58,088 nucleotides of DNA. It comes from Klebsormidium nitens. Its lineage: Eukaryota > Plantae > Klebsormidiophyceae. Where the stretch lies: contig DF237519.1 in assembly GCA_000708835.1 (NCBI GenBank), positions 1 to 58,088 on the forward strand. The letters run 5' to 3'. The translations under genes and the position numbers were made by a program. The notes beneath the pieces were generated by a model. It worked only from the letters and a program-made list of their open reading frames with translations. It had not been told where the DNA came from and made no database searches. Position 1 is the first letter of the stretch. Every line of letters starts with the position of its first letter. Positions 9,901-54,827 of this stretch are shown in pieces.

Positions 9901-12195
9901 CGCCTCCCGTCGTCTGGCACTCTGATAGGCATGCCCATGCTCTCCCCCCTCATCGAGTTCATCGAGACACTCCTGTTAATCTCAGCACCCCGCAGCACAT
10001 CGTCATACGCACCAGGGGGGAAGGCCCGAGACTGGGCCCCAGGGCTGTGGCTCCCCCCTGAAAGAGTGCTCGGGCTGCCCCCCCGCGCCAAACTTGCGCC
10101 GAAGATCATCTCGTCGCTCATCTTGAGAAGGTCCCTCGGGAGCGACTCCTCGCCAAAGTGGAAATCCTCCGGGAGGCCGCCGAAGGGGGGCTCTGGCGCG
10201 CCCGTGTTGATCTTCCGGGGGGCAGACATCGCTGGTATCTCGACCCCCTCACTCCCTGGGCTCTCTGACAGGGGGGCTTGAGAGTCCGCCTTCTCTGACT
10301 CGCTCTTGCCCCCCTGAGGAGGTACAAACTCGGCCGCATTGGGGTTGAGACTCAGTGCCGCCAGCTGTAAGCTCGTCAGCCCACTATCCTCGTCCCAGGG
10401 GGATCCCCCATGCCCCAGCTCTTCCTTCTCCTCACCCCCCTTTTTTTGCCCCTCATTCACCCCCCCCTCCTCGTCATCCGAAGACGAAGCCTCCGGGCTG
10501 CTTTTAGAACTGGGCCGCTGGGCCTGTGCCAAGGCCAGGCCACTGAGGGCCTCTTTCTTGCTAAGGGACTCCAGGCTGCTCGGGCTGGTCATGTCAGAAA
10601 GCGGGCTCTTTGGGCTGCACTCAAAGATATCCTGGTCAGCCTTAACCTCGTGCTTAATCAGCGCCAAACCCTCGTTCTTGACCATCGGCATACCCAGCTC
10701 AAACATCCCCTCCGGAAGCTGCTTCTGGGCTCCCTCGCTCAAGAGGCGCGACGTCTCAATCTTTCCCGGCGCGCTTTCCGACACGTTGAACCCCGTGAAC
10801 CCCAGCGAATCCAGCCCCGCCAGACCTCCATTCCCCCACAGACCCTTGACCCCCTTCACCGGCACAGGTACCCCTTTTGCATTTTCCGGCCCATCTTCGT
10901 TAGACTGCCCGTTCTCCCCAACCACTGACAGGGCGCCACCTGGCACATAGCTCGACTCGACACTTGTCGCACTCAGGTCCTTCGCCGCCAGCTCCTTCTT
11001 GTCCTCGTGGTCCGAGGCTCTGCTGGCAACCGAACAGCTGCTGGCTGGGCGGCTGAGGCCCCCAAACGGGGGGGTGCTTTTCCCCTCTTCCTTGCCCCCC
11101 GGAGACTTCCGAGCAAGAGGAACTGGGGCAACTAGATTGGCCGCATTGTTGAGCTCAGCAGAGCTAGCGCTTGAGAAGTTGGAAATCGCCGACATGCTGC
11201 GCTTCATAGCGGGGTTGAGAGAAGATGAGGAACTAGATAGGGAGAAGTTGGAGCTCCAGTAGTCGCGGTAGTCGTCCCGCGGCTTCCCGGCAGCGGCGTT
11301 GCATCGAATTTGCTCGAGGAGGCCTTGCACCCGGCCCTCAAGGCCATCCATTCGCAGCTGGAAAAACAGGAATTGACACTCTGTTCGCAAAAGCAAGCAG
11401 GATGCTAGAACATGGTGATTCAAGTGTCAAATTGCTGAAGCTATGAAGGAGAGGGACATGGGCCAACATTCACCAAAGTAGAGATGGTCAAAATGGGAGT
11501 CCACTGCTTTGAACGAGGAATGTACTTGAAAGTTACACGGAAGGTACCGTGTGAACTCAGAGCTCGGATGCAGCCGTGGTTCAAACATGCTGCAAGAGAC
11601 CCAGATAGTGTCCTGGTCTCACCATCTGTGATCACAAATAAGAGCTCTTTTTAGCTACACACGAGCAACGAATACAACATGAATCAGTTGAGCTGATGAA
11701 AATTTGCATCTGTCACTCACTGTTGGAAGGAAAAGGTGGAGGTTTTCTGTCACTGCTTGAGTGCTCTTGCCATTCTTGTGTTGCATTGCCTCCTCAAAGA
11801 TGATTCTGCACATCAGAGTACTAGTTTAGGTTAATTTCTGGATCAAGACCTTGGCACAATTCTGCAGCGCGATCCAGCTGGCGGCAAAATACAGCCAAGC
11901 AGATTTGACAAAAAGGTCAATTTCACGATCGGCTTTGTCAATACACGTTACACGGGATTTGCATTAAATGGCTGCTGACACAAGAGAGACGGTCTCCGGT
12001 GGGATTGCATTTCCCACTCTATGATCGTCCCCCATCAAAACTTATTCTGCTAATGAACATATAGTGAACAGAACCCAATACTCACTCGCTCAGATAATCC
12101 ACCACGGGCTCGTCCAGCTCGCTGTTCGTCTCCCAGAGGAAACGCGCCACCGCCGGGCGCGCTGCATCAGAAGCCTTCACCTCTGGCGCTCCCAT
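6905..12195 (-). CDS. CID7: CID7-like PABP-interacting protein (PAM2, CUE-like, DUF1771, Smr), 7 coding exons, ~1092 aa
   Basis: complement(join(6905..7222,7578..7902,8279..8403,8716..9529,9856..11357,11721..11805,12086..12195)) = 3279 nt, with GT-AG introns and consistent phases. Motifs: PAM2 SLNPNAAEFVP; CUE-like VLAAEFPGFPAEGLAEIFFSNGCDLALTMEMLTQLE; PWLETGDAVAGMYGQLRDEARDYARARNACFEQA (DUF1771); Smr LDLHGLHVAEA...VVGTGHH. An in-frame ATG at 12222 is an alternative start. Confidence 0.88.
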
Positions 12196-14756
12196 TTTGC
12201 AGGAATTGTCGGCCTGCACCATGCATGGGGGTTTATTGTAAGAAGGGGCATCAGAAACAAGAAGGGCTGAAGATGAATGAGAGGTAGAACAAAAATAAGG
12301 CAGGAGAGGGCCAAAAAGGATCTAAGAACAAGAGAGCTGGTGATGCGGCCAACTGTAGCCACAGTCTCAGCAGGTGCAAATTTAGGTATCAGCTAGACGG
12401 AAGACAGCTCCTTGACAAAAAGTGGCCCATCTCAAACTTCTGTCCTACAAGCTTCCATCTTTCACAACCAAAGAGAACTCGCAACACGATGTAAACCTTT
12501 TCCCCTGTTTGAATAGTTCCTACCAAGATTCTTAGCAACTTCGGCAAAGTGCAATTCATGAGCCTCCTTCCGTGCAATTCCAGGCATGTATGAGGAGAAC
12601 AACAAGTGCCTTCTCCCATAGCCTGTTGGTCAAAGTTATGGACAGCGGGCTGATTCTGAGCTAGTCCAAATATTGAAGCAACACAACTCCACCTATGGCG
12701 GCTTCCATGAGAGGACGTGCAAAGCTCTCAACCTCATACCACAGGCACAGCTGCAACAGCTGGACTGTTCCCGCGCACTTGCCAAGCCAGAATGCACTTT
12801 CAGGGACTTGCGTAGGGCAAGGCAACAACTCGCCTGGCATCCTCAACTTACACCAACAGCATGCCCAGTGATAATCTTAGTTATAGAAGAGCTACTCAGC
12901 TTGATGTGGGTGTGATCTCACAAAGCTTTGCTTGTCCAAGAAAGCTTGACAGCTTGCCAATCTTTTAGGAACATCACGGTCAGCAGTAGAGGTATCCCAC
13001 ACGTGCTTGCATCAGGCACTTGCACCTTGAGGGGATGCCTATCGTGTTTGCTACTTGAGGAGGTGAACAAAAGAAACCCTTGCTGCGAACTTTTGAATTG
13101 ACCTGAGGGCTCACACTCAAAGACAAACAACCACTCTCCATAACCTGGCCAGCTTTTACTTACGCGTTGAACACTCTCCTGACAAGACAGTCATCCGGAT
13201 GGTGCGTTAACCGCGGAAGTCACTCCCCAACATGCATTAACAACTCTTGTAAAGACACAGCTCCAAGGCTTGACTTCAGGAGCACGGTCCAACACGACAC
13301 CCAAGCGCAGCTCACCTAGCTCAGTCTCTTCCTGCTCTTGCGCACTTTCGAGCGGGCACATTCATTTCCAGGTCCTGCAGACGCTGCGAACCCCCTACGC
13401 CTTGCTCTGAGCTCTCAGCAGCTGGCCACACAATCTCACGGCCCAGTTTCTCTTGCAAGCAACTCAGACAGCAGCTTCCGCCGAAGCAGACCTACCTACC
13501 GTGCTGCAATTGCCTGCCTACTGTAGAAGGAAGCCATGCCCTTCCGGGTTCCCTCTGCCATTGGTAGGAGGTAGCCATAGAAAGCTCACCGGTTTTACCG
13601 GTACGTGGTATTCTCTGCTTCTTTTTGCAAGCCATGTGCGGAGTCAAGATGCCGCGTACCCTAGCGTCTGGGGATTCCCATGTGGGCATGCCCCCGAGCA
13701 AGAGGCCAAGAATTGATGACGAGGCTTGCAACTTGGAATCTCCGATAAATACGGTAAGGTTCCCAATGTTCCAGTCATTCTCATGTTCAGCTTGTAATGG
13801 TGCCTTATGACCTCCAAGAAAGTCTGAAGAATCAAACGATGCCGGCACAGGGAGCATCAAACAGTTGAGAGGCGGTTACCGAGCCACACCTTGCTTTAAA
13901 TGCTGGGGTTTTCCGTACATGGGGCCCAGAAGGACCCCGAAGAAGGGCCCCCTGAAACTAGTGATTCCGTATCTATCCCCCTGAAATAATGAAGTCCGAT
14001 TCTGGAAAAAATTTCACGTTCCCGGAATCCAGTGTTTGGTTCCTCTTCAAGGCGGAAAAGGAATCTTTTGATCCGTTCATCTGCGCCGTCGATGACCCCA
14101 CTTTTCGCTGGCATTACACACTCTGGGAAATCACATGCCAACCAGAGGATTCCGGTGCCAACACCTACCCAGGTACAGCTGGGTACGGTATCTCCCTACC
14201 TACGGTACCTGTAGGCTGTAGTCGAGTACCGGTAGGTACCTAGCTGGAGCCTGGTCGGACCGGGTGGGCCTGGTACGGAGAACACCGTACGGACCGCTGA
14301 AGACTAAAGTTGCATGGAAGATCCTCCCGACGTACAGTTTCTGGTCGGGATTGTCCAGCAAGTTCATTTTCTTGACACAAAACAAACTTAGCGTCTTGTA
14401 TTGTCTAACGTGTCATACTCTATGTATGCCACCAGGTTCACTGAATGAGGACGGCTGGACATCGGTTGTCACCGCTGGTCAGTGGTCACATTGGAATTTG
14501 GAAACCGAGTCAGTCGGGTTGAGCCACGTGGCGATGCTCGGACTCCTAACAGAAGTTGCTACAAACAACAATTTAATACAGTATCCCTGCCGGCCGTTCC
14601 TGTTCGCATGCGCGGCGGCGCGGCCGCGGAACTCATCCCCGCCTACTTTAGCGCGCGCGTGCGCCCCCCGGTACTTGTGGCGTCAAAATTGTCGTGTCCA
14701 GCCTCGCTTGAACTTGCACATTTCAATCCACATTACACCGTCAGCCGGAGCTAACG

Positions 14757-17700
14757 ATGGCTGCAGCGGAGCGAGTAGTTGTGATGGACAATGGGGCTGC
14801 CTCCCTCAAGGTTGGCTTTGCTGGCGAGGTAGCCCCCCGGAAGGAGATGCCCAACTGCATCGTCCGAGGGAAGGGGGCAAAGAGGCAGTATGTCGCCGAT
14901 CAAGTCGAAAGTTGTGAAGACATCCAATCCCTCACGTTCCGCCGGCCATTTGACAGGGTAGGTGTGCGATTTCAAGTTTGCGCGGGGGAGGTTTTCCACC
15001 TTGATTCTGAAAGCCTGGCGTATGCAGATCTTTCTCAATCAATTCTGGTGCGCAGAATGTCTGCTGACTTTGGTTCTCAATGGTGGTGCTCTTCGTGCCT
15101 GCCATTGCTAGAAAGTTTACGGGCCAACTAAGTAGTTTGAGCAGGTTGCCCTGCTCCTCCCTATATAAAACGTTGGCTCTTTCAAAGACTGTGAGAATCT
15201 CAGAATCTTTGCATTCATAAGTTTGACGGAATGGTGGAATAAACATAAGGAGCTCAGCTTGTAACATGCAATTAATTTTCCTGGGACGGGTGGGGTTAAT
15301 CAGGGATTTGGAGTTGGGCCCCCATGCACATCAGGTAAAGTTTGGGTTTAATGGCAGTTTTCCTCCGTTTGTATCATACCGTGAGCTTATGATATTGTTT
15401 CAGAGAGTCATGTTGGTGGTAGTTGTGCTTTGATTGCTGGTCAGAGAGAATCATTGGTGGTTCTTCGCTTGATGGAAGTTCAGGAGTTTTCAAGGAAACA
15501 AAAGTTCCTTTGAAACTTATGACCACAACTGCAATCACTAATCATGCCCACTGATCTTTTGGTCATTTTGCTTTGCCCCTTTCATTTGTTGCCGTTAGCT
15601 TCTTCTGTTTTTCTCACTTGGACTCTCAGCTGAGACTTGTCCTCTTCTTATGCAGGGCTACGTTGTTTCTTGGGAGACGCAGAAAGAAATCTGGGACCGT
15701 GCTTTCTACACCATCCTTAAAGTAAGCCCTCTATTTCATTTTCTCCACACTTCATTCGACTTCCAACTTTCCACTTGATTCAGATGAACAGATTCTTTGA
15801 ATCACATCCGTAAAAGGTCAAAGTATTTGCACAGCAATTATGGCCCGTATCCTATGTTTGAATATCTACCACTTTCTTCCAGGCTGTAGCTAACTTCATA
15901 TGCAAATTCCGCCAAACCTTCTTTCTTTCAAATAGTCGACGCCAATTACAAGCACAAACCTGATTCATTTTGAAACACAGATTGAGCAGCTGAGTCACGA
16001 AGCACAACGTTGATGTCTTCGAACGATTATACCTCCCAGAAATCCTGGAGGTCCAGGTCTTTGGAATCAGACAACAGAGACAACAAAGCTCAGGACCGTC
16101 TCCATTGAGCAGCCTTTTCTGTTCCTTCTAAGCGGCGTGCCTTCTAACTACGACTTGGTCTGCAGGTCAAACCGTCAGAATGCAGCCTCCTAGTCACAGA
16201 ACCCCCGTTCAACCTGCCCTCCATTCAGAGTTCTATGGACGAGGTGAGAATCACAGGCCTGTTTCAGATGGTCTCCACGCTACAGATGGTGAACTTAAGC
16301 TCGAGGGACGGGTGGGGTTAAGTCGCTTGGTCCGCATAGTATTAGTGAGCTACTTCCTTCCGCTTTCACTCTGGAGTGTTTGCCACTTGCGAGCACCCCC
16401 CGTTGGCAGCCCTCCTGCTGCCTTTGCGCTAAAATACTCGTTTTCTGATTGGAACCATCTCACATTCTTTCTTTTTCGTCCTCGATTCCTGTTGAGCAAT
16501 CTTAAGCCCCCATTTCGGATCCAGTTAATCAGCATCCGTTCAGACCAATTGCTTTCGAGCAGACAGCTTCATTCGCCAAGAACTTTGGCTTGTTGCTCTG
16601 ACCTATTTTCAGAGTTTCCGCTGTCTTGAACTGACGCCAAATCTTCTGGTTCCAGAGAACTGACTCCTCCCCATTGGAGAAGCTTGCTTTGGACGAGTGC
16701 CTTTCCCATGTCTGATAGAGCTGTTTCTTTGCGACCGTACCAATATCATCGTAGCGACATCACCCTTGTCCGTGCTGACGTCACAGGTTCTCGCCCTGCC
16801 AGATGGTCTTTGAGGAGTACGGCTTTCGAGCGTGCCACGTCGCCCTTCCCGCCGTGCTCTCCCACCGCCACGTGGCAACCTCTGAGCCCGCCAGCACGCT
16901 TGCAAGGGGCGGCTCGAGCCTTGTGGTCGACTGCGGGTTTTCGTTCACGCACACGGTGCCGATTTTTGACGGGTTTCCCGTTAGTCATGCGGTGCGGCGA
17001 TTAAACTTGGGGGGCAAGGCGCTGACAAACTATCTCAAGGAGCTCGTCTCTTACAGGTGAGCGATCGGGGACTTTTGCAGAGGTCCCCGAGAAGATATTC
17101 GCGTCTTCTTTGGCGGGTAAGCTTTTGATTTCATGATTGACATCTTAGAAAGGCGTTCGGCAGCCCTCTGGCAATGATGAACAGTCGATCGAGAGAAGCC
17201 GTTTGCGTCCGATTTCTTTGAGAGAAGGCTAGATGCTGACAGTATGCGCAACAGGCTACTCGACTTGTGGAAAGTATGTTAAGGGCCGGATCACGAATGT
17301 AGCAGCGGAGTTACTCGAAAGCGGTCGAGGACCCTCTCGTTGTATCTGCGATGTCACTTTTGAGAAGGGCGCACGAGTTACATGGCAGACGAAGACCATT
17401 GAGGTCGTGCTATTGGTTTGCGAGCATAGCGTATGCAGGTGCATCGAGGTTGTTTCCTTCGTTTCTCCGAGTTTGAGTATATATCGACTAACGTAGGATC
17501 TCAACGTGTCCATAAGGGGCGAACTATGTTGTGACTTTGACTATAAGGAAAACGGGGCATAATCCGAATCGGTACAAATCCTAAACCGACCAGAATCACC
17601 ATACCAGGGCCTCGTTCTTGATCCGGAAAACAGCTCTTTACTGAGGACGGGAAAGGAAACAGGGCCTCGAACATGCTGAAAGAGAAGGCCAGCACCGAGG

Positions 17701-40028: not shown

Positions 40029-42254
40029 CTAATTCCAGGTGTTATCGCCCCCGCCCTCTGCGTAACCCCCGGTGTCTCCGGCAGAGAAACCGTCGCCGCC
40101 GCTGGAGAAGTCAGCGCCTCCACCCCAAGCGTCCGCAGCAGCAGGAGTGGCGTCGAGTCCTCCGCCCCAAACGTCCGTCGCAGCATGAGGGGCGTCAAAG
40201 CCCCCGAATTCCTCGTCCGCAGGCGCGGGTGGGTCATATGCAGGCGCAGGAGGAGCGTCCGCAGCCGCTAGAGGGTCGTCCGCAGCGGCGGGAGGGGCAT
40301 CCGAAGGCGCGGGAGGGGCGTCCGCAGGCGCTGGAGGGTCGTCCGCAGGCGCTGGAGAGGCATCCGAAGGCGCGGGAGCGGCTTCCGCAGGAGCGGGAAT
40401 ATCGTCGGCAGGCTTGAGAGGAGCGTCCGCAGGCGCGAAAGGGGCGTCCTCAGGCGCGGGCAGGACGTCCGCAGGCGCGTCCGCAGGCGCTGGTGGGGCG
40501 TCCGTAGGAGCAGGGGGACAGTCCGCGGGCGCGATGTGGGCATCCGCGGGCGCAGGAGGAGCGTCCGCAGGCGCGGAAGGCGCGTCCGCGGCCGCGCCGA
40601 TGGGCAGGTCCTTGTATTCGCCTCCAGTCTGAAACGCGCCTTCGCTTCCATCCTCGAAGATCAGGCCCCCTCCGTTGCCAGCGGTGTTGTCGCATAAGTC
40701 TTCCGGATCGCCTCCGCTGGAGTGACTCGAGTGACTAGACTGGCGGGAGTGACTGGACTTGCTCGAGTGGCTGTGATGGCTGCCTTCGCCGAAACCGTGA
40801 CCGCCGTGTTTGGGGTGTGCTGTGACCATGTGAGCGACTTGGTGTAGGGGATCTGCAAGATGCAGAAAGTGTTCGTATGACTTTCTTGTTGCCGACAGAA
40901 GGGCGTTGAAGGTATGCGGTAGCGAGCGGGACAAGCTTGTTTTCCCGTCCAATAGACTCCGATGGAGTACATCAAAACATATTCGGTAGATACAAAATGT
41001 TCGCAAAGCGTACCCTTGGCTCTGCTGCAGTCAAAGTCTTCAGAGATTGATCAACAGAGCCTGCAGTGTTGCACTTGTTCAGGTAGGGCTGAATTCCACT
41101 ATTCGCAACCCGGTCCACCCCTAATGAAAGTCATCTGCTTTCATTAGAATGCAATCGAATATTCTTAAGGAACAGATGAATCCGAACCTGCGACTTTTGA
41201 GCATCTCTTTCAACCTGAACAAAGGTAGAAGGCAGGAAACCAAGGATTCATGTATACAAGCCAGATTGAGTTCCAAAGAGGAAATGCGATAGAGAGATGC
41301 CTACTCACCCCTTTTCTTCTTGCCGACATGTGGCTCTTTGTGGAGTCCAAGCTGCAAGAAGTGGAAACGGCGAGTTTCTTGGAAAAGTCAGGAAACATGT
41401 AGATAAGTCGACCGTGGCACACTTACGAAGCATGTGACTTCATCATCCGACAGATTTGGAAGTTCTCCGTGAACAAGCCTGGAATTCGCTTCTTGCGAAC
41501 TTCTTCAGATCAAGTTCTTGTGATTTTTTATGCGCCTTTTTTAAAAACCATGGCTTCGTCCTTCTTTGATCTCGGACAAAATCAAATAGCAGCCCTGTCA
41601 AGCGGTCTTTCGCAGTTCTACAAATACAAGGGCAGCGCCTTTGTTTACCTCAGAGGGCTTCACAGCCCCAGCGATGATACTCAATGGGATCGTCTTCTCT
41701 TGAGTGTTGCCCTCGATAGGTTGTTCTACAAATGGAGACGCTATCTTGGTTTGGCACTCTTCAATTCCATGATGTTGCGCATTCAAGGTGGCAGCCTGTT
41801 CGTCTTTGACGGTCCCCGCAGGATCCTGCTCCTTTCTTTTCTTTTCACCACCGAAGGCCTTCTGAAGGACGGCTTTCGCCTTGTACTGCAGGAAGATCAG
41901 CAGATTAGCGAGTCAATTCAGCAGTCTGTAAGAATCAAGGCTAATAAAGACAGTCTGCGCGAAACAAAAAGTGATAAGTTGAACAAAACAATGATACTTT
42001 ATCCCCTGATCCCCTTTAAACGGACTGGACGCGATTCTGAATCTGGACAGATCTGTATAGCTACGCTGGATTAGAAGAGCTTGCCGCTCTGCTAGGTCGT
42101 TACGCTGCATCTGGGGCCTTCACCCAAAACTTGACCCTTCGATTCCGCACAATCCATCGTTCATTGGGCTTGATCATTTTCTTACCTTGAACGAAGGTCT
42201 CGGATGATCAGCAGACTCCGACGTTTGAGGCGCTGCCCCACAGCAAGAACGCAT
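40029..42254 (-). CDS. Orphan low-complexity protein (~390 aa) with a His/Ser tract and Asp-Ala-Pro heptad repeats
   Basis: complement(join(40029..40852,41309..41351,41649..41885,42186..42254)) = 1173 nt with GT-AG introns and consistent phases. Likely non-coding upstream exons have an acceptor near 42466 and a donor near 42617. No family recognised. Confidence 0.65.
40250..40595 (-). repeat. Coding 21-nt tandem repeat (~16 units) encoding D[AD]PPAPA-type heptads
   Basis: The plus strand repeats variants of gcaggcgctggagggtcgtcc. Translation: DAPSAPA DAPPAPA DAHIAPA DCPPAPT DAPPAPA ... DDPPAPA DAPPAPS. Confidence 0.9.
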
Positions 42255-42876
42255 GGCTGTGCACTGGGAAGAGCTGACTACAGCAGCTTTGCTTTTCTCG
42301 AAGTTCGATTTGTTCAGCTACAATCGCAGGCGCAGCAACAGGAAAGGGAGAAAGATGGTGATCTATCACGGCGGAATGCGAAGCTCGAAGGAGAATGACA
42401 GCCAATCTCGAAGGGAATGCTCGCAAGAGGTTTAAGTGCTTGTCATGTGACACACGCGCTGACTCTGCAAATAAGATCACCGTCTGCGCACACCTCGTAT
42501 TGATTTTATGCGGGCCGCAGCAAGCGTGTGGCCTGTGGACCAGGCGAATTGCGGCCGCGCAGCGCGTGCGCGCGACTGGACCGTCCAGTCACTTGTTGAG
42601 GGGTTTACAACAAGTACCTTGCCACGCGGCCGTGCCCTAGTGCAGATCGCGGCCGCAACTAGCGGCCGGTCGGACGATGGTGGCGCAGCCTGGCGCGGCC
42701 GCACAAGCTTCACGATTGAGTCACTGGGCCGGGTGCGCTCGCAGCTATGCGACGCGACTAACGCTCGCTTCGCGTTCACAATTCGCGGAAGCCTACAACG
42801 GATTCTCGTTATGCATGAGGAGCTGTATCCTATACGATACGAAGATTAATGCTCCCGACCTCCTCCCGCTCCCATG

Positions 42877-42958
42877 TGTTAGAAGTATTTGCGCACTGCC
42901 ACTCGGGCTACACTGGCGCCAGTGTGGCCCGAGTGGCAGTGCGCAAATACTTCTAACA
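42877..42958. mobile_element. 82-bp palindromic element, copy 1
   Basis: TGTTAGAAGTATTTGCGCACTGCCACTCGGGCTACACTGGC|GCCAGTGTGGCCCGAGTGGCAGTGCGCAAATACTTCTAACA: 41-bp arms with one mismatch, no loop, TG...CA ends. It directly abuts the Copia 5' LTR. Confidence 0.9.
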
Positions 42959-43240
42959 TGTTAGAATATTGCCAGTCTAGTTACTGAGACAGTAGCTAGG
43001 TCCAGTCAGTAGTCTTCGTACCGTACGATGATGCTAAGATTGACTACGACCGTCGATATGACAAGTAGAGGGAAACCGTGTAGGAGAAGATCTATGCCGT
43101 GACCCTGAGAATTTCATTCGTAGTGAATCCTCCTCCACGACAAGTCGCCTTCTCTCTTACGAGCGCTTCTCTGCACATGGTTTCATGGTGTCCATGCACG
43201 AGCCTGCAATAGATGCTTCTATAGACGCTGCAATCTAACA
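42959..43240 (+). mobile_element. Ty1/Copia 5' LTR (282 bp)
   Basis: Starts TGTTAGA and ends TCTAACA (7-bp terminal inverted repeats). It is followed immediately by a PBS and then the gag-pol ORF. No second copy was found in the window. Confidence 0.85.
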
Positions 43241-43253
43241 GGTTATGGGCCCA
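43241..43253 (+). promoter_or_regulatory. Primer-binding site GGTTATGGGCCCA (tRNA-iMet half-molecule type)
   Basis: Lies flush with the LTR 3' end. It matches the PBS type of Drosophila copia, which primes from the internal anticodon-stem region of initiator tRNA-Met (established knowledge). Confidence 0.8.
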
Positions 43254-43533
43254 CCATCACACGGATGGTGAAAGAAGCTCTTAGAAGGAAAGCTGTTAGA
43301 TGTCATTCTGATTGGTTTGGTTTGGGGCCGGTCACAGCAAGGCTCATTTTTGAGAGTGCTGTGGGAAAGGCTTGAGGGAAATTCCCAACCACCTTTCAGC
43401 TCTCCCTGGGGAGGGCGTGGCATAAATTTCCTTGAGCTTAGGAGAAGCAGCAGGTTCAGAATTCCTTCGAAGGGAGGCAGCACTTCAGTATCCGCGAAGA
43501 AAGCGGATAGAGTGAGCTCCAACAGGAAGGAAG

Positions 43534-46119
43534 ATGGACACCAATGAGAAGATTCACATTGAGAAGCTGAAGGGAGCAGAGAACTATCAGACCTGGAAGG
43601 TGCTGATAAAGCTTCTGCTGACTGAGAAGGGTCTCAAGAAGACGATCGATCCTGAGACCAGGTCAAGCGAGGAGTTGGCTGCAAGGACTGCAGCAGTGAA
43701 GGCAAAGGAAGAAGAAGATCAAGAGAAGGCTCTGGCAGCAATTGGTCTTCGAGTGTCTTCAGAATTCCTTGGGATCATCACAGATGCTGATGGATCTGCA
43801 AGAGCAGCCTGGGAACAATTCTCAAGGATGTTCCAGTCTGTGACAAATGCAAGAAAGATGATGCTCAGGGAGAAGCTGGCATCACTGAAAATGGAGAGTG
43901 GAGAATCAGCAGCGAAGTATGTTGCTAAAGCAAAGGACCTCAAAAGAGATTTGCTGCAAGCAGGTCTAGACGCTGGAGACGTAGATCTTGCTGCTGCATG
44001 TGGTTTGTCCAGGTCCTACAGGGAGATTAGGATGGCACTAGAGCTGCAAGAAAAAGCTATCTCCCTGGATGAAATGCTTCCTCTCCTCCTCCAGCATGAA
44101 GCCAGACTCGAACGTGATGAGGAAACAGATCATGGAGAGTCCTCCAGTTCAATGGCCTTCGCGAGCAAAGGCTTCAAGCAGCATGCGGGGAAGTCTCAGA
44201 GCAGAAGACCAGGTCCTAAGTGCTGGACGTGCGGAGAAGAAGGTCACAGATCCTCGGAGTGCTCTCAGAACAGAGACAAGGACGAGGAGTGCAGGAAGTG
44301 TGGACTGAAAGGCCACATCGCAAGGAACTGCAGAAAGAGAGATTCGGGCGAAGGAAAGAGTGGAGAAAACAGGGACAAAGGGACGAGGAGATCCATGGTG
44401 TTTGCCTGTCCTCCAGAAACAACTCTCTCAACACTCTGGATTCTGGACTCTGGAGCAAGTGCTCATCTCTGCTGTCAAAAGGAGATGTTCTCAGAGCTCA
44501 GGGAACTCAAAGGTGGCGAGGCAGAGGAGATCCAAGGGGTTGGAGATGCAGTCAGAGTGGAGGGCATTGGGAAGGTGCCTCTGATTTGCAAGACCGAAGA
44601 GGGAGAGATGACAGAGGTCATTCTCGAAGGAGTCAAGTTTGCTCCTCAGGCGCAGGTCAATTTGGCAGCACTTGGCAAGTTTCTCAGCAAGGGAGCAACT
44701 CTGCACAGCGAAGGAAGCGTGGTCAGCCTGAAAATGGAGGGAGAAAAGTTCCTAGAAGCGGAGAATCAAGATGGAGTGTCGGTCATCAGGACAGTTTCGC
44801 AGAAATCTCTGGCCTTTGCAATCACTCAAGCTGATGAGGGAAGACTGTGGCACAGGCGCTTTGGTCATGCGAGCTGCGAAATCCTGGCGAAAATGGCGCA
44901 AGATTCTCTCGTTGAAGGACTCCCCCCAGCAGCAGCCTTCCGAAGAGCCGGCGAAACCCTCTGTGAAGACTGCGTCCTCGGCAAGCAAACTCGGAAACCC
45001 TTCTTCCCCAGTAACCGTCAAAGTCAGAACCCCCTCGATCTAGTTCATACGGACCTCTGCGGTCCGATGCAAACGACGTCAGCCGGGGGCGCTCGCTACG
45101 TCGTCACTTTCATAGACGACTACAGCCGGTGTGGGACGGTGCAGCTGCTAAGAACCAAGGAGCAGGCGAAGCAAGCCCTGGAAGCTTACGTCAGCTGCGT
45201 GGAAAACCAACTGGGGAGAACGGTCAAGAAAATCCAGAGCGATAGGGGCGGAGAGTACTGGAACGGGGAAGTCAAGGCGTTCTGTGCGCGCAAGGGGATC
45301 ATCCATCAGAAGACCAATCCCTACTCGAGTCCGGAAAACGGGGTAGCGGAACGGTTGAATAGGACTCTGATGGATAAGGTGCGCGCGATGCTGTCTGAGA
45401 GCGGATTGATACAGAAGTGGTGGGGCGAAGCGGTTCTGACTGCGAGCTACGTCAGGAACCGGACGGCGACCAAGACGCACGGGAAGACCCTCCTGGAGCT
45501 CTTCTTCGGGCAGAAGCCAAGTGTGAAGGAGCTCCGCGTCTTCGGTTCCAAGGCCTACGTCCACACCCCCGCTCAGAAGCGAAAGAAACTCGATCCTGTC
45601 GCGAAAGCCGGCGTCTTCCTCGGGTACGAACCAGGAACCAAGGGGTACCGGATCCTGCTGACGTCAGATCAGAAGACCGTGCTGATCTCGCGTGACGTCA
45701 CGTTTGACGAAGCGGAACGGAAGGACCCCGAGGGAGCGGAAGCCTGGGAAGACCCTCCGCCTCTGCCGTCAGTCTCGTCTGAGCCCGTCGAGCCTGAGGG
45801 AGAGAATGAAGAGGCGGAAACGGAAACCCCAGAACCGGAGCCGGAGAACGGAACGGAAGAGGGGAGCGGAACGGGAGAAGAGAGAGCGGAACCGGAAGCG
45901 ACGGGAAAGAGGGAGAGAAGACCGAGTCAGCGCTACCCCTCGAACGACTGGGTAACGGCAAACCTCGCAAAGGAGACGGCGGAACCGGTGGAGCCGAAAA
46001 CCCTGGAGGAAGCGCTAAGCAGCCCGGAAGCCGCATTTTTGTTAGAAGTATTTGCGCACTGCCACTCGGGCCACACTGGCGCCAGTGTAGCCCGAGTGGC
46101 AGTGCGCAAATACTTCTAA
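43534..46119 (+). mobile_element. Ty1/Copia gag-protease-integrase ORF (861 aa), truncated before reverse transcriptase
   Basis: Contains Gag N-terminus KLKGAENYQTWK, two CCHC knuckles (CWTCGEEGHRSSEC, CRKCGLKGHIARNC), protease WILDSGAS, HHCC (LWHRRFGH...CEDC), DDE core (HTDLCGP, SDRGGEY, GVAERLNRTL) and a C-terminal GVFLGY..KGYRI motif. It ends at EPKTLEEALSSPEA, the usual pre-RT motif. The last ~26 codons and the stop come from palindrome copy 2. Confidence 0.95.
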
Positions 46120-46121
46120 CA
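46040..46121. mobile_element. 82-bp palindromic element, copy 2
   Basis: Exact reverse complement of copy 1 (the single arm mismatch is on the opposite side). Flanks ATTTT / CACCC show no target-site duplication. Confidence 0.9.
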
Positions 46122-46558
46122 CACCCAACACCCAAAGTTCTCCATTTCTTAAACATTTCGTTGAAATAGTAAAGCTATTGCGAGCGAAAGCGAACTCGAA
46201 ACTCACAACATGTCGCTCTCGAACATATCAATTCTTGACGTCTACGTCTAGATTGAGCTCGAAGAGAGCGACAAGATCAAAATTGAGTGAGCGAAGCGAG
46301 CTATAAAACGCTTCTGAGCAGCGAAATGTTTCATTCCAAAGAATCAAGAACCGCTAGCGCCTTCCCTCCGCCAAACAAGCCCTTCCAACTTAGCACGCTT
46401 TCAATCTCGCCCTCCCCCCCCCGCCCTCAGTATCATTGCTCGCTCGATTCGCCTAACTCAAACCCGAGCTCCCCAGATGTTGATTTTGCGTCGAAGAGCT
46501 GCACCCAACACCCAAACTTCTCCATTTCTTAAACATTTCGTTGAAATAGTAAAGCTAT
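46122..46558 (+). repeat. 57-bp direct repeat pair (46122-46178 and 46502-46558)
   Basis: CACCCAACACCCAAA[G/C]TTCTCCATTTCTTAAACATTTCGTTGAAATAGTAAAGCTAT twice, with one mismatch and a 380-bp period. The first copy begins at the base after palindrome copy 2. Confidence 0.85.
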
Positions 46559-49500
46559 ACGGAGGTTACGAGACAGATATCGATGCACGCAAAAGATAGT
46601 CCTTCCGCGCTCAGAGTACCCCAGTCCCACCCCGGGCGTCACGGAGGCGGGCTCTATAAAAGGCTCGGGCAGCGCAGACTTTCGCATTGAGAAAAACACT
46701 GCTATCCGTGCAAATTTATCAAGTCGAAGTCGACCTCAATTAGACCATCATCAACCATGCGGCGTCAGCGACAAGAGTGGCCGTGGTGAGCATCGTTACG
46801 TCAGCTCATCGCAGCAAACGTCATCAGAGCCGCAGCACTAACGGACGCTTTAAGTGGAAGCAACTAACGCCGTTATGAACTCGCAAAAGAAAAAACCCCT
46901 TGACCAAGGCATGAAAGACAGCAGTTTTTTCAATCTCCAGAAAGAAACGCTGGCGGCAAAAGTATCCCAGTCTTGTGGAGTCCCATTGAGATGACGTCCC
47001 TCAGACTTCCAGCCTTCTTTCAGTCCCGCCTGGCAGAAACTAACTCTTGGGTGCGTGCTAATGGTTTCTGTAAGGCGTGCCGTTGGTTTCGCTAACAGAA
47101 GGACGTTCATCTCGACAGACCGACTTATTTGCGGCACAACAAGCGGCTGCCCGCTTCGCTATGATAAGAGGGTTACTGAGAGGGAAACAAAAAACAAATG
47201 CACCGTAGAATATCTCTTGCTGGAAAATGGAGTCTTCTCAATCCGCACTGCAGGCTGAACCTAAAGAGCACGGGTAGGTTCCGTTCCTTGAAACAGCAGG
47301 CACTAAGAGCATACGGAAACGTTGGCTCGACGTACTTTCCGGTTTCTCGACAGCTAGACGGACTTCTTCAGCGCTTCAGACGGGATGGATCCATCGTGTG
47401 ATCGTCTTGACGAGATACTTCCAGCGGCACAATCAGATTTACGCGGTCCGAAAAGTAGATCCTCTCAAAAGCAGACAATCTCTACTTCTTGCTCCGCTCA
47501 GAAAGAACCTCGAACCATCGGATCTAGAACGTCACGGTTCCCATGCGTTGTCAGCCGGGCCAGCGGGCCTAACCAAAGGCACGAAGAAGCAGCCCGCAAA
47601 TTGTTTCTACCAACTTGAAATCATAATTTTGACCTCCGTTGTCACACAAGGGGGCTCTCTGGGGGCGCATGCACCGCTTGGAGACATGCCCATTGGCGTA
47701 CTGCTAGCCCACTACATCATAGCCATCCTAGGATTGCCCGGCCGTGCTGTTGTCGAAAGACCCGGTAGGGGAAGACGGGAGCCTCCGCCAATATCATCTG
47801 TCCAAGCAGCCGGCAAGAGAAGGAAAGAGAAGGAAACGATGAGGCATAACTAGGAGCATACACTGCAGAGCCCATTCTCGATTCTCGGACTACCCGAACG
47901 CAGCTGAGATCGGTGTCTAAAGGTGCATGGGTGTCCAACTTGTAAGAAGCTGATAATAAAATTGGTAATCCGTAGAGACGAGGAGAGTTACTTGACCAGA
48001 AAAGCTCGTCTTAATTGTGTAGCTGTCATGGTCTCAGACCTGAGCTCGTAGCTCAGGGGTCTCGAGCTTCTCAATCATTGCTAAACAGAGTCGTTGTTTC
48101 CAAAAAGAGCAGTAAACAAAGTAGGAGTTGGCACAAACCTTGACGGAAAGAGCGTAGAAGGGAGAACTTGACGAAAGCAGCATGGGAAGCTGAGCTTTTA
48201 GAGTAGGGAGTAGATTGAAGGCTCAGCCGAACGTGCGGCAAAGATATGAACCTTTAGCATACACCAAGAGGAGAAGAGGTTTAATTGCATCTAATGCATC
48301 TAAGAATATTGAACTGTCATTTACAACGCGCTTGCCACGAGCAAAGGATTCATGCTGTATAGCACGAGATAGATGCTGACGCCAATATTAGCTGGATGAC
48401 TCTGAGTCATGAGCACTGGCAGATAAGCAAACATAGCCGGACGTCAAGCAAAGGACTCTGTTACTGGAACGTAGAGTCTCGACGCCACCTCCTCAAACGT
48501 CATCCTTGATTATCTGTACATGCACACGCCATCAGGAGCGCTGAGGTCCTATGGATTGAAGATTCTGACCTGAGCACGTTAGCGGCCTCTGAGAGGACCA
48601 TGAAGAGTCTAGGTGGATCGTGTAGACCAAACCCACCTCCTGCAATCGTCACAGCCACCAGTGTGAGCGGGAAATTAGGAGAACTTAGCGAACACAGCCA
48701 GCTTATGATGGAATTGAAAGGAAAGAATTTATTTCTTGAGTACCTGGTCGTGTAGATTTTATCATCACGGAACGATGCGCCGACCAAGGGGTTTATGAAC
48801 GGAATGCTGATTCCTCTGGGCGCTGTGTGGGCAACCCAAGGGATGGACACACCCTAACACTCACTGCTCACTGCCAGCATCTGTTAACACTTTAGAGTCG
48901 CAGTAAAACCTGGTTGAAAGCATTCTGAGCGTAATTCCATGCCGTGTAGTGATTCTTTGGGCCCCTTGGCAGAGCTCAGGCGCAAGCCCACGACACCCAG
49001 ATCTGGCGACTACAGTAATGCCACGTATGAGAGAGGCGGGCAGGATGACCAGGTAAGAAGCTGTGAAAATAGACCTTTTTGTCTCAAAACGTCCTTTGAC
49101 AAACCTCATAGACCGGACCCTTCATGGATCCAGAGCAGAGACCGACGATGATCGGAAAAACCTACGGGCCTCTATGAGGGAGCGGTTGGCTGCAAGACGT
49201 TCGACCTGGCTTCCGCTCAGATCTGCATCTCCGTGATTGACGGATATTCGGGAATGCGGAACATTTAGATGCAATCAGTCGATCAGTGCAAAAAGCCTCA
49301 AAGATACAAAGACTTCTGAAGTCTGCAGGTCACAACCATTTTCTTTGAATGCGTAAACGGGTCAAGAAAATGAGCAGAGTCCCCAAAGCCTAAGCCAAAG
49401 CCGAAACAGAGTTAGAAACTTGCGGTCGCAAAGCGGCTCATCTGCGACCATTATCCTTGTCAACATTCTGACAGGCCAAGTGTCTGTCATAGCCGGTCCT

Positions 49501-49761
49501 CATGCAGCAGCACTTCGTGTTGGGATGACAGAACACTTCTCAGAACGATCGTGAGAGGGTTGAATGCCACGAAGCGGTTTTGTACCGAACCTAACCCAAA
49601 AACCTGACACCTCGAGCAAGCTAACATGAAAGGGTTTGAAACCAGGCTAGCTTGCGGCAGAAACAGGAGTTTCACAGCCATGCCCAAGCGAGAGATAGAA
49701 CTGTGAAGGATTCAAGGGACGAGAACATGTGGCGAAACACGAGCCACTTTGACGTTGAGAC

Positions 49762-49918
49762 CATTGAGTTGGGGTCCAATAGGAGAGCGCCCACGACGAT
49801 AGCTGTCAGCAGGAGACTGGACGAGACGCCGGAGATGGCGATGCCGGTGAGGCGGGAGAAGCCGCGGACCCAGATGGACGGGAGGACGGCGGCCAGGCTG
49901 CCGAGAATCACGGAGTGC
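49762..49918 (-). pseudogene. Isolated exon of an AVT1-like amino-acid transporter (TM4-5 region)
   Basis: Acceptor ctctccttgaag| is followed by GC-rich codons for HSVILGSLAAVLPSIWVRGFSRLTGIAISGVSSSLLLTAIVVGALLLDPNSM, which resembles the Aa_trans LP..WLR.LS.L motif. I could not find flanking exons, and the 3' boundary is approximate. Confidence 0.55.
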
Positions 49919-51796
49919 CTTCAAGGAGAGACTGACACGATTCCTCTAGAGATCTCAGAACCAGACTACCGGACAAGATGAGGAAAGCTTTGGAATCCAA
50001 CCTCGAGAGCACAAGACTTCGTGAGAACTTTCTCCCTTGTCGTTTTGCAGTTATAAAAGCCTGGTGTCTTCTCGGCCGACGTCAGGACCAGGGTAGCCGC
50101 GATGCGTCTCGAACGGAGGCATCCAAGGGCTTTTCACGGTCCAGCCTTCCGAAAGTGACCCCATCCATGGGTCCTCAAGTCAAGGTTGATGAGACAAGCT
50201 TGGTGCGCTCTTTTGGTCAGACAAATATGGCAAAGAGTAACACAATTCCTTAGTGGCAAGCAAAGCAGGGGCAGGGTACGAGCAACTTCGTGGCAGTTCC
50301 ACAAAGGTACATGCCAATCTTCTCGGGACGAAATTCAGATCATCAGAAATTCAAGAGCCAAAACAAATATAAGGGAGGCGCAATACCGAGGTGATTGATG
50401 ACTGTAAAAGTGGCTTCGGGGACGGGAAACTTTGAGGCGGTCAATGAGCAAGAAGCTCTTGGTGTCGGCTCACTCACGGCCAATGTCCACAGGAGCTTGA
50501 CAAAGTGCGCAAGGAAGATAATCAAAGGCACGCAAGATGATATCCGGCGGAAAGTATGAGAAGCGAAGAATCATTGATGTGCAACAGTTCACAGAAACAG
50601 AGATGTGTCAGCCAACTGCGTGCAACGAGCTCGAAGATTGATCACCAGACCGGATAATGTCGGCGTCCGCGGGTCACCCGGTTCCTGTGAGCAATCGATC
50701 GCTCAATAGCTCCTATCTTCATAGCCTCTCTTAAAGCTTCTACCAAAAATGGACTTTTACATGGCCGTTTCAAAGCCGTCTTGCGCGCCCTGAGGAACTA
50801 ACTACGATACCTCGGATCAGTCGCACAGCCCAAGAGAATAGACAACTACAAAAGCAAACGCTGATCCAAGTTTTGTGGCTAGGCCCCGCGAAGCTGATGC
50901 AAAATAATAAATGTACGCCGCTTTGTAACATACACAAATCAGGAATATCCTCGCTGCAGCTCATTGGCTCATCCCCCAACGTCCAACAACTTCGACAAAG
51001 TCGATGGGGACGCCTTCCACATCGTTCAAAAGGATTGTGCGACCCTCAACCATGACGTCGGGGAGTAACGGCTCGCATTACACCAACTGAGCAAACAAGC
51101 TCATGCATAGCGCCTATCATGACAAAAGTGCGAGATACTACGCGAGTCCGGAAACCAAGAATTTGTAAGAGGCTTACATGCGCAAGCAGACGTTCGACAC
51201 AAATCGTACGAGACGCACTTCCTTCTGTCGTAAACGCAATTAGTGTTCGGGGCGTGCGAGTACAACTGATTGCAAGGCGAGTCCGTCTTAACGTCTGTGG
51301 AAACGCAGATGCCCCCGAAGCTAGCGCATGTCCAATTTTTCAAAGCCGACGCGATCGAGAAGCCAGTAAAGAAGCCGCACTGCGCAAAAGAAGGCGCTCG
51401 ACTGTACCTCTTTGAGTTGTACCGTATGCTTCCTTTCATGACGGAAGACAAGGTCAGACTAGCTGGTGACAGGAACAGTACGAGGGAAGAACTTATGCCA
51501 CCGCTTCAAAGTGGGGCAAGAGTCCCCAATGGGAGCGGCTCAGAGCGGCTAGAGAGGGGTGAGCTGATAATCCCAGCCTGCAAGTTTTCATAGCCACTGG
51601 TAGCGGGGAATGGTGCGTTTGGCAGGACCAGAAAGAGCAGACTCGTGTCATCGGCACGGGCACGTGTCCGTAATACAGAAAGAGACTGCGAAAAAGCTGG
51701 ACAAGGGTTTTGAGCATCGGAACGGGACGCTGTCATTCTTTTGCAAAACATTGCCCCATGGTTCCGGGCGGGCAACGTCTTTGTTCACAGGGACAG

Positions 51797-52781
51797 TGTT
51801 AGAAGTATTTGCGCACTGCCACTCGGGTCACACTGGCGCCAGTGTAGCCCGAGTGGCNNNNNNNNNNNNNNNNNNNNNNNNNNNNNNNNNNNNNNNNNNN
51901 NNNNNNNNNNNNNNNNNNNNNNNNNNNNNNNNNNNNNNNNNNNNNNNNNNNNNNNNNNNNNNNNNNNNNNNNNNNNNNNNNNNNNNNNNNNNNNNNNNNN
52001 NNNNNNNNNNNNNNNNNNNNNNNNNNNNNNNNNNNNNNNNNNNNNNNNNNNNNNNNNNNNNNNNNNNNNNNNNNNNNNNNNNNNNNNNNNNNNNNNNNNN
52101 NNNNNNNNNNNNNNNNNNNNNNNNNNNNNNNNNNNNNNNNNNNNNNNNNNNNNNNNNNNNNNNNNNNNNNNNNNNNNNNNNNNNNNNNNNNNNNNNNNNN
52201 NNNNNNNNNNNNNNNNNNNNNNNNNNNNNNNNNNNNNNNNNNNNNNNNNNNNNNNNNNNNNNNNNNNNNNNNNNNNNNNNNNNNNNNNNNNNNNNNNNNN
52301 NNNNNNNNNNNNNNNNNNNNNNNNNNNNNNNNNNNNNNNNNNNNNNNNNNNNNNNNNNNNNNNNNNNNNNNNNNNNNNNNNNNNNNNNNNNNNNNNNNNN
52401 NNNNNNNNNNNNNNNNNNNNNNNNNNNNNNNNNNNNNNNNNNNNNNNNNNNNNNNNNNNNNNNNNNNNNNNNNNNNNNNNNNNNNNNNNNNNNNNNNNNN
52501 NNNNNNNNNNNNNNNNNNNNNNNNNNNNNNNNNNNNNNNNNNNNNNNNNNNNNNNNNNNNNNNNNNNNNNNNNNNNNNNNNNNNNNNNNNNNNNNNNNNN
52601 NNNNNNNNNNNNNNNNNNNNNNNNNNNNNNNNNNNNNNNNNNNNNNNNNNNNNNNNNNNNNNNNNNNNNNNNNNNNNNNNNNNNNNNNNNNNNNNNNNNN
52701 NNNNNNNNNNNNNNNNNNNNNNNNNNNNNGCCACACTGGCGCAAGTGTGGCCCGAGTGGCAATGCGCAAATACTTCTAACA
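51797..52781. mobile_element. Insertion bounded by palindrome copies 3 and 4 with a 5-bp TSD (GACAG); interior unsequenced
   Basis: GACAG (51792-51796) | TGTTAGAAGTATTTGCG...N872...TGCGCAAATACTTCTAACA | GACAG (52782-52786). The two partial copies differ at three positions where they overlap, so they are distinct copies. Confidence 0.85.
51858..52729. other. Assembly gap (872 N)
   Basis: Run of N. All ORFs crossing it are artefacts. Confidence 1.
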
Positions 52782-54827
52782 GACAGTTGGAAAAAGCTGT
52801 CCGACGCCTTGGTTGAGGGGTCGGACGTATGATCGTTCAACCAGCCAGTCATTCAAAGCCTTCTGACGAAAAGTTCGGAAAAATGAGAGGTTAGCTACCC
52901 AAAATCGGCTTTTCGGCTTCGTTGGATGGAGGGCTTCGCTTCTCTTTGTGTGCGTAGAACGCACTGGCAACTTTTAACAAGACGCTGCCCTCTTTCTGGT
53001 TTATGAAGAAGAGGAGTGTATCACAAACCAAAGGAGCCATCCTGATTCACGAAACCGATACGAAACGAGCCATCTTCACTGTTTATTTTCTTTCTTCCAA
53101 GACGTAGCTTCAGGGCGACCTGTTCGAAAACCATGTGAGCTTCAAATGCTCAGGTGCTCTCTATCATAGCCAGGTATACACAACTTCTAAGCAACTTCGC
53201 TTCTGAGACCGTCATAAAGGTCCAGCCGCATCAGGTCAGCCCTGCCCAGACCGTGAGCTCGACATCACGACCAGGATATGTGCACTCAAACGAGGCCAAG
53301 CATGCCAAGCATGAAGCCTACCTAGCTGAGAGCCGTCAAGGTCCTTGCTCGGTTGTGAGCTTTTGAACCTGATCAATCAGGGTTCTGATCGGACAAACGT
53401 ATGCGGCATCTGAGACAAGCCAAACCACGCAAAGAACTGAGCACCAAGGCTCGCGCCCAAGTTCGTCACAGGCGCACACAAGTCCGGCCAGGCGGTGTCC
53501 GCGCAACCCGATAGCGGTGTGAGCAATAACATGGACACATATCACCGCAACCGTACCATTCAGTATTCTTGAAAAGCCTCCCCTGGCTAGCTTGACCAGA
53601 CTGCTCAAGGACTAGAATCAAGTAACCTTCTACCTAACCTGTTCAAGAAGTTTCGTACAACGACCATTGACTTCCACTGCTGTCAGCGGTTCTGAGAGCT
53701 TCAAGGAACACGGGCGAAGCAGCTGGGCGAAATTCTAATGCACATCAACAAGAGACCAGAACATTGCCTTACAAGCGGCTCAGAAGACAGTGACAGTTCA
53801 CCGTGTGAGCTCCTCAAGCTCACCGGACTTATCACAGCCATTATAATTGAATCGCTCTCACAGGTCTACTCTTGAGAGGTTGATGGAGTTTCAGTCCGAA
53901 ATGCTCTCACGTCGAGCGAGGCAGGAAACGTTTTCACCAAAGAAATGAATTGGATTTGGAGACTACTTAGATTAGGCTGCGAGACACATGACGTTGGGTC
54001 GGAAACAAAAAGGTGGCTCCCGGATGCCATCATAAGCTAAGGCAAGTGCAAAACACTGATGATTACATGACACGCCACATGAAAAATTCTGAAGCTCTTC
54101 TGATGGGCAAGAAAATCAGAAATCACAAGCTGCCACAAGGTCCCTTCCGCCCAGAACTCGAAGTACGTGGCAGAATCGTGAAGTCTGATATCTACCGAGA
54201 AACGCCAGTAGTTTTGATTCGTCGTAGCCACCACTCGAGTGATCCGGGAGGTGCGAGTAAGCAGATGAAAGATGATGCCCTGCTAGTTCCTGAAGCGAAA
54301 TCTTGTCACAAGGAAGCGTAACGTCAAGGCGAACACACCTGAGCAATCAGATTCCACATTCTCAAGAGCTTGCAAATGGCACACTCCAGGCTGCAGCGAC
54401 GTATAACTTGAGCAGACCCTTGAAAGGTACACCAACTGGTACTCCCACCCAAGCCAGCAGAATACTCCATATCTATGCTGGATCGAGGCAGATCGGACAC
54501 TTTCCTTTCCAGAGGCACTATAAGTGCTACCTCAACTTGAAAGCAGTTTGAAGAAGCGGTCAAGCAAAAGCTGGCAGACTCCTCGGTCTCAGAAGTCGGG
54601 CGTGACACGGAAACTAGCTCGAATGATAGGGTGACAAGCACCTGCTTCGGCAGATCAAGAATGGCATACACACTTGCATGCATGATGAAAAGTGCCCAAT
54701 GACAGAAAGAACATTCGATCGAACATTCGTGAAAGTTGTGATGCTGTTTAGACCATCTCTTTGAATGGTTGGGTCCGCCCAACTGAGTGTTCCCAATAGA
54801 CTGTCAAATGACGAATCGCGACTGGAA

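Follow-up and report, generated by a model that had tools for sequence, protein, structure and literature searches.

A loopless 82-bp palindrome with Copia-type ends in Klebsormidium nitens: a dispersed repeat family and a candidate element made of terminal inverted repeats only

What kind of element is an 82-bp palindrome that has no spacer between its arms, ends like a Copia long terminal repeat (LTR) and occurs four times within 10 kb? The question is raised by contig DF237519.1 of Klebsormidium nitens (GCA_000708835.1), a stretch of 58,088 nt that constitutes the window analyzed here. A first-pass annotation had taken the palindrome for a head-to-head fusion of two Copia U3 ends, inserted by Copia integrase. 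We confirm the observation and find the interpretation partly supported. The palindrome is a real, dispersed, multi-copy repeat family with precise TG..CA boundaries and not an artefact. With moderate confidence, we favour its being an element of the MITE kind (for miniature inverted-repeat transposable element), made of terminal inverted repeats (TIRs) only and moved as DNA by an integrase-type enzyme.

Palindrome copies, termini and target sites

The window contains the following copies:

42877-42958, unstranded: palindrome copy 1, 82 bp, with a GGGCT variant in the left arm and the consensus in the right arm
46040-46121, unstranded: palindrome copy 2, 82 bp, the exact reverse complement of copy 1
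51797-51857, unstranded: palindrome copy 3, partial, the first 61 nt, from the full left arm across the centre to 20 nt into the right arm
52730-52781, unstranded: palindrome copy 4, partial, the last 52 nt, with two private changes in the right arm

These copies are as the first-pass annotation had described them. In copies 1 and 2, arms of 41 bp that are complementary at 40 of 41 positions meet without a spacer at the centre GGCGCC and terminate in TG..CA. At its inner edge the arm carries a 14-nt self-complementary motif, the centre of the palindrome reading ..CACTGGCGCCAGTG.., and the two copies are mutually reverse-complementary throughout, their single asymmetric site included. A 32-nt pattern of the arm, with three mismatches or fewer allowed, is matched six times in the window against an expectation of 0.00. 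As single-stranded DNA the unit is predicted to form one uninterrupted hairpin (-49.7 kcal/mol, z = -15). It contains no open reading frame (ORF), primer binding site (PBS) or polypurine tract (PPT). The peptide read from the palindrome's reading frame occurs in no protein of the two libraries searched, Rfam returned only sub-threshold matches to generic hairpins (miRNA precursors), and the ORFs around the palindromes in the window carry no Pfam domain.

The termini were compared with five LTR families from four K. nitens loci, six related Copia loci having been fetched in all. All five LTRs begin with TGTTAGAA, identical to the arm at 8 of 8 bases, and the LTR of locus L002 has 11 of 11 bases in common with it (TGTTAGAAGTA). 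The LTR that adjoins copy 1 (42959-43241; start TGTTAGAATATTGC) aligns with the arm over the first 14 nt with two 1-nt indels and ends in TCTAACA, both as previously annotated. LTR 3' ends have just CTAACA in common with the arm, the end of which is closer to the 5' (U3) ends than to the 3' ends of the LTRs. These matches show the arm terminus to be a lineage-specific, Copia-type end; we estimate the probability that arm and LTR starts agree by chance beyond TGT at ~1e-4. The unit does not correspond to a complete LTR of the fetched elements. Only its first 8-14 nt match LTR starts, the likeness to the arm has ended by ~20 nt in all five LTRs, and the arm is absent from all six Copia loci retrieved, with none adjoining five of them. 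Of the proposed U3 fusion, the Copia-lineage, U3-like character of the ends thus stands, but the LTR beginning with the full arm for which the first-pass annotation had advised a search is not among the five.

One pair of palindromes encloses an assembly gap and is itself enclosed by a target-site duplication (TSD):

51792-51796, unstranded: left TSD, GACAG, 5 bp
51858-52729, unstranded: assembly gap (N run, length only estimated), bridged by no re-assembled contig
52782-52786, unstranded: right TSD, GACAG, 5 bp

Copies 3 and 4 abut the gap, and GACAG lies directly outside both ends of 51797-52781, which upholds the annotated 5-bp TSD; such a flank match has a chance of ~1 in 1000. The duplication is as long as the clean AAAGC/AAAGC around the Copia element of locus L004. 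With TG..CA ends, the att bases of the lineage and a 5-bp TSD, the segment 51797-52781 has the features of DNA inserted by a Copia-type integrase. No TSD accompanies copy 1 (flanks CCATG and TGTTA) or copy 2 (flanks ATTTT and CACCC). The inverted repeat formed by these two copies extends outward by 2 nt (TG and CA) and is then followed on each side by CCCA (42871-42876 and 46122-46127). This CCCA could represent a 4-bp duplication around a 3.2-kb unit, a pattern that we estimate would arise by chance with a probability of 0.001-0.005. The L004 element that served for comparison is itself nested: at 8667-16101 of that locus, an inner Copia with identical 264-bp LTRs and the AAAGC duplication lies inside an older one whose LTRs are 97% identical.

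We compared 51200-53400 with Logan contigs from four runs of one K. nitens sample, in which word depth is a rough guide. Copies 3 and 4 both cross the palindrome centre and disagree at 3 of their 31 overlapping positions. A re-assembled contig that enters from the right has 22 differing letters to the left of 52737, unlike both the scaffold and the left partial copy, which suggests a degenerate left arm for copy 4; contigs from the left of the gap end inside the arm. The 3/31 disagreements and the 22 different letters together indicate two separate palindromes ~0.9 kb apart, and a single palindrome collapsed across the gap was rejected on account of the mismatches between the partial copies. 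No joint between an element end and an element start was seen in the re-assembled contigs, which drop rare forms; this argues against a simple head-to-tail array in the gap. The palindromes explain why the scaffold breaks here.

Dispersal and inheritance of a one-arm variant

In three of the runs the unique flanks have word depths of 15.7-19.3, and a 45-nt unitig whose first base is exactly the initial T of the arm reaches 397, 359 and 575. From these rough depths, the exact subfamily amounts to ~22-31 arm equivalents, i.e. ~11-15 full palindromes. Between 45 and 54 contigs per run fall on the unit (23 in the fourth, low-coverage run), and many of them, 0.5-10 kb long, pass from unrelated flanking DNA into the element exactly at position 1, the initial T of TGTTAG. 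None of these flanks occurs in the window, and the counts of distinct flanks and of arms are of similar order. Neither the exact arm nor its degenerate core has a match (0) in the prokaryotic-genome, viral and metagenome collections scanned, which rules out a common linker or contaminant. As the K. nitens genome measures ~104 Mb and contains some tens of loci, four copies within 10 kb form a strong local cluster. The flanks of copy 1 show no homology to the DNA that follows copy 2, so that the window holds no empty-site paralogue.

Sister subfamilies were also detected. All begin with TGTT and keep the inner core, and they differ in the terminal ~18 nt, reading for example ..AAAACTTAACA or ..AAAACTCAACA. 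One contig of run X4, from another locus, repeats a sister subfamily's right arm every 41 nt, which means that arms exist as direct tandem repeats too. Another contig of that run, which may represent one end of a larger parent element, contains the arm, continues for 6 nt past the centre and then runs into 1.7 kb of other sequence at ~2x unique depth.

The single asymmetric site of the unit bears on its mode of copying. Read in one orientation, copies 1, 2 and 3 each carry GGGCT in one arm, the partner arm reading GGGCC (GGGTC in copy 3). Fold-back synthesis yields palindromes whose arms are perfectly complementary and would erase a one-arm variant at each generation. Since three independent, identical mutations are unlikely, the common variant indicates that the copies descend from one asymmetric master, and since the asymmetry was passed on, that the whole 82-bp duplex was copied or moved as such. 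The variant thus favours propagation at the DNA level and disfavours as a generational step the fold-back self-priming that had been suggested for the unit; gene conversion between neighbouring copies is an alternative source of it. Inheritance of the variant also means that copy 2, as the reverse complement of copy 1, is merely the same variant inserted in the other orientation.

The Copia fragment between copies 1 and 2

Together, copies 1 and 2 make up an inverted repeat of 84 nt without mismatches that encloses 3081 bp (42875-46123). The features of the enclosed DNA and of its right-hand edge are:

42959-43241, plus strand: Copia 5' LTR, 283 bp, TGTTAGAA...TCTAACA, abutting copy 1 at a CA/TG junction
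43242-43256, plus strand: PBS GGTTATGGGCCCACC, common to loci L002, L004 and L006
43534-46039, plus strand: Copia reading frame (gag, zinc knuckle, protease, integrase, SH3-like), lacking reverse transcriptase (RT)
45793-45804, plus strand: internal copy of the 3' PPT, CCTGAGGGAGAG, with the break point 235 nt downstream; candidate central PPT
46122-46178, plus strand: first copy of a 57-bp direct repeat, its first base directly following copy 2

The ORF that opens at 43534 remains open to a stop at 46117-46119, inside copy 2. Its 861-aa product has no entry on record, and the proteins closest to the enclosed Copia are annotated K. nitens proteins (GCA_000708835.1). Neither a second copy of the LTR nor an RT is found anywhere in the window. 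The PBS GGTTATGGGCCCACC is presumably complementary to the anticodon arm of the initiator tRNA-Met and not to its 3' end; we liken it to the half-tRNA priming of Drosophila copia. The window contains no tRNA gene.

The enclosed fragment starts exactly at the LTR start, and its homology to intact relatives stops at 46037-46042. An environmental relative, L006 (83% DNA identity to the window Copia, dS ~0.6, dN/dS 0.11-0.19), ceases to align with intact elements in that same short interval (its 2981-2984), at the border between integrase and RT, and continues past the break into unrelated DNA without a palindrome. The two copies, which come from different organisms, thus break at one place, and the break point is recurrent. 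At 243-279 nt upstream of it, each of the six compared elements repeats its 3' PPT internally; in L001 the internal copy (2408-2419) and the 3' tract (4211-4222) are identical at 12 of 12 positions. This copy is a candidate for a central PPT of the sort that Ty1, EVADE and lentiviruses possess. Its sequence, CCYGAGGGAGAG, lies in the region coding for the integrase C-terminus, and homologous sites are present in L002, L003, L004 and L006. Central PPTs with DNA flaps have been described for Ty1 and Arabidopsis EVADE (PMC7197481), and the same paper, citing Garfinkel 2006, places Ty1 autointegration near the flap. With low confidence, we suggest that the enclosed piece may be a left-half product of replication that became captured in the chromosome, either DNA spanning the U3 start and the end of the upstream plus strand or a result of autointegration.

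Several other accounts of this arrangement were considered and set aside. An intron at the break is possible in L006 (GTAAGG), not in the window, and a break at the central PPT itself was rejected, the break lying 235-279 nt downstream. An inversion between copies 1 and 2 predicts hybrids that are directly identical, yet the copies are reverse complements of each other; the exchanged flanks, moreover, yield no TSD. A circle integrating into a resident palindrome, by crossover at copies 1 and 2, fits the topology and is made unnecessary by the same hybrid arms in copy 3.

Candidate mechanism, alternatives and known relatives

According to the explanation that we favour, the unit would be non-autonomous, consisting of two 41-bp TIRs joined at a self-complementary centre, and would propagate as whole double-stranded DNA. 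Insertion would be carried out by an integrase-type DDE enzyme that recognizes the local Copia-lineage ends (TGTTAGAA.../...TTCTAACA) and produces 5-bp target duplications; it is the integrase-type ends and the 5-bp TSD that suggest a DDE enzyme from the class of retroviral integrases. The palindromes do possess the anatomy of MITEs: TIRs at each end (41-bp arms complementary at 40 of 41 positions), small size, no coding capacity, homogeneity and multiple copies (82 bp, ~22-31 arm equivalents, dozens of flank contigs). The enzyme could be a transposase derived from an integrase, of the Ginger/TDD kind, or a Copia integrase acting in trans, for instance from the adjacent open gag-PR-IN element (gag, protease and integrase). 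The transposase receives slightly more than half of the weight placed on this explanation and the Copia integrase slightly less. We know of no retroviral-type integrase that excises chromosomal DNA, and this lack of a known activity in retrotransposon integrases favours the transposase; the long match to host Copia LTR starts favours Copia integrase or a recent derivative of it. The loopless form may have arisen when two inverted ends of a longer parent annealed at the 14-nt motif during abortive gap repair, which is the classical model for deletion derivatives. Pairs of palindromes could then bracket other DNA, as at 42877-46121 and 51797-52781, and the four copies within 10 kb would reflect local movement.

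Besides this lack of a known excision activity, several points weigh against such an element. A TSD accompanies just one of the three testable units, and that unit contains the unread gap. As there is room for as many as ~21 arms in the gap, some of the excess depth may be local. The reads, from one sample, are probably the assembly's own source and amount to a second assembly, not an independent one. The termini of the subfamilies vary more than the inner core, contrary to what many TIR families show. An autonomous partner bearing these TIRs was not found in the window and the fetched Copia loci, and the five fetched LTRs include none that begins with the full arm.

Of the alternatives, it is improbable, in our judgement, that the palindrome belongs as a MITE to a cut-and-paste DNA transposon, Ginger/TDD-like or otherwise related to integrases, that is functionally unconnected with Copia, the resemblance of its ends to Copia being due to shared att ancestry or chance. 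The arm fits the Ginger terminus TGTNR and the TIR is at least 40 bp long, TDD-4/5 make 5-bp TSDs (PMC2836005), MITEs derived from Ginger2 exist (PMC3845634), the common one-arm variant indicates DNA-level propagation, and the 1.7-kb contig past the arm could be the end of a larger parent. The match to LTR starts nevertheless extends well beyond TGTNR (8/8 with five LTRs, 11/11 with one; chance ~1e-4), no such transposase was seen in the window, and the plant member GingerRoot makes 6-bp TSDs and is not reported from algae. We judge similarly unlikely a larger mobile unit of palindrome, internal DNA and palindrome, whether foldback-like, TRIM-like (terminal-repeat retrotransposon in miniature) or composite, of which solitary 82-bp units would be recombination remnants. 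The sole TSD, GACAG, does flank two different palindromes ~0.9 kb apart, and the 84-nt inverted repeat around 3081 bp, with CCCA set 2 bp outside each end, would suit such a unit. Most flank contigs, on the other hand, begin at the palindrome end and the distinct flanks are about as numerous as the arms, which fits solitary units; no PBS follows copy 1 and no PPT precedes copy 2, the interior of 51797-52781 being unread; and 42877-46121 shows no canonical 5-bp TSD. A little more doubtful still is the by-product model built on the first-pass annotation, in which the first 41 nt of an LTR, joined head to head by fold-back or strand pairing at GGCGCC, would be inserted by Copia integrase as a dead end or a self-primed parasite. 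Copia-lineage, U3-like ends and a 5-bp TSD agree with it, the self-complementary centre could prime fold-back, the adjoining Copia DNA has ends resembling replication ends (the U3 start and the recurrent break 235 nt after the internal PPT), and central PPTs, flaps and autointegration products are known for Ty1 and EVADE (PMC7197481). Fold-back arms would be born perfectly complementary, yet three copies bear the same one-arm mismatch; the whole arm is in no LTR among the five fetched; and sister subfamilies with the same centre and different ends suggest descent as palindromes.

Two remaining accounts would do without mobility. That the unit is non-mobile, the product of segmental duplication or rearrangement around a fragile palindrome, with GACAG a coincidence, is in our view highly improbable. 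Two of three units have no TSD, four copies lie within 10 kb, and a 57-bp duplication begins at the edge of copy 2 (its second copy, at 46502-46558, is 98% identical to the first); dozens of unrelated flanks nonetheless start exactly at the element end, diverged subfamilies exist, and a 5-bp flank match would be a ~1 in 1000 event. Least credible of all, and largely refuted, is an artefact of assembly or library construction, due for instance to a hairpin linker or chimeric joining. Some mate-pair libraries use palindromic linkers, and one palindrome pair flanks a scaffold gap; but copies 1 and 2 stand in uninterrupted sequence, point variants, subfamilies and a TSD are present, the depth is just ~25x unique, and the core is in no other collection scanned.

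Integrase-related DNA transposons are among the known systems closest to the MITE-like element proposed here. Ginger elements have TGTNR termini, TIRs of 40-270 bp and 4-bp TSDs, those of TDD-4/5 being 5 bp (PMC2836005), and the Ginger2_NA MITEs are MITEs of integrase-like transposases (PMC3845634, PMC2836005). The K. nitens unit, with its TGTTA start and 41-bp TIR, agrees with the first two of these features; its TSDs comprise one of 5 bp (GACAG) and one possible of 4 bp, the CCCA set 2 bp out. Like the MITEs of Ginger1 and Ginger2/TDD, it is non-coding and multi-copy, with TG..CA (TGTNR) ends, TIRs of ~40 bp or more and short TSDs. It differs in lacking internal sequence, its TIRs meeting at a self-complementary centre, and in ends that agree for 8-11 nt with the LTR starts of the host's own Copia elements, Ginger being related to Gypsy integrases; the target preferences of Ginger1 and Ginger2, CCGG and TATA, are not seen in GACAG. 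Solo Copia LTRs and TRIM/SMART elements have the TG..CA ends, the 5-bp TSD, the Copia-type terminal bases and the very small size in common with it. The unit is, by contrast, an inverted and not a direct repeat, in which no U3-R-U5 organization can be inferred, and at 82 bp it is, to our knowledge, below known LTR sizes. Nor do the palindrome pairs present the direct terminal repeats, PBS and PPT of a TRIM: an LTR start follows copy 1, no PPT precedes copy 2, and the interior of the second pair is unread. The distinction from TRIMs drawn in the first-pass annotation therefore holds, while that from MITEs does not, given TIRs, a TSD, the lack of coding capacity, the copy number and the likeness to Ginger/TDD MITEs.

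Further resemblances concern the way in which palindromes bracket DNA. The bracketed Copia piece spans the U3 start to a break 235 nt after the internal PPT, the region in which autointegration of Ty1 has been reported (Garfinkel 2006, as cited in PMC7197481). By-products of Ty1 and EVADE are extrachromosomal dead ends, whereas this piece is chromosomal and lies between two palindromes. Foldback elements and short palindromic repeats also have near-perfect hairpin potential and occur in pairs that bracket other DNA; foldback arms are, however, long and built of subrepeats, while in K. nitens one 41-nt unit with integrase-type ends makes up the entire arm. We know of no description of a Ty1/EVADE-type by-product captured in a chromosome between two palindromes. 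In full-text literature searches, which did not extend to Repbase and Dfam, no account of this family or of palindromic elements with Copia ends came up. A loopless, TIR-only MITE with Copia-lineage ends in a streptophyte alga is thus undescribed, unusual but not unprecedented.

We regard as an unlikely further possibility that Copia integrase moves DNA that has never passed through RNA, with the palindromes as its chromosomal parasites or, in a stronger form, with 42875-46123 as a nascent DNA transposon derived from Copia. If Copia integrase does serve these ends, no smaller substrate of an enzyme from an LTR retrotransposon would be known, and the passage from retrotransposon integrase to DNA transposon, so far inferred only from comparisons of Ginger and Gypsy, would have a living example; the stronger form would supply the Copia counterpart of the Gypsy-related Ginger elements. 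Even on an ordinary reading, this is an undescribed family of TIR-only repeats in a key streptophyte reference genome, and its perfect 41-bp hairpins are likely fragile sites and sources of small RNAs. Elsewhere in the window, a minus-strand ORF of 325 aa without a Pfam match contains a GC-rich tandem array of ~14-16 units of 21 bp, at 40128-40602.

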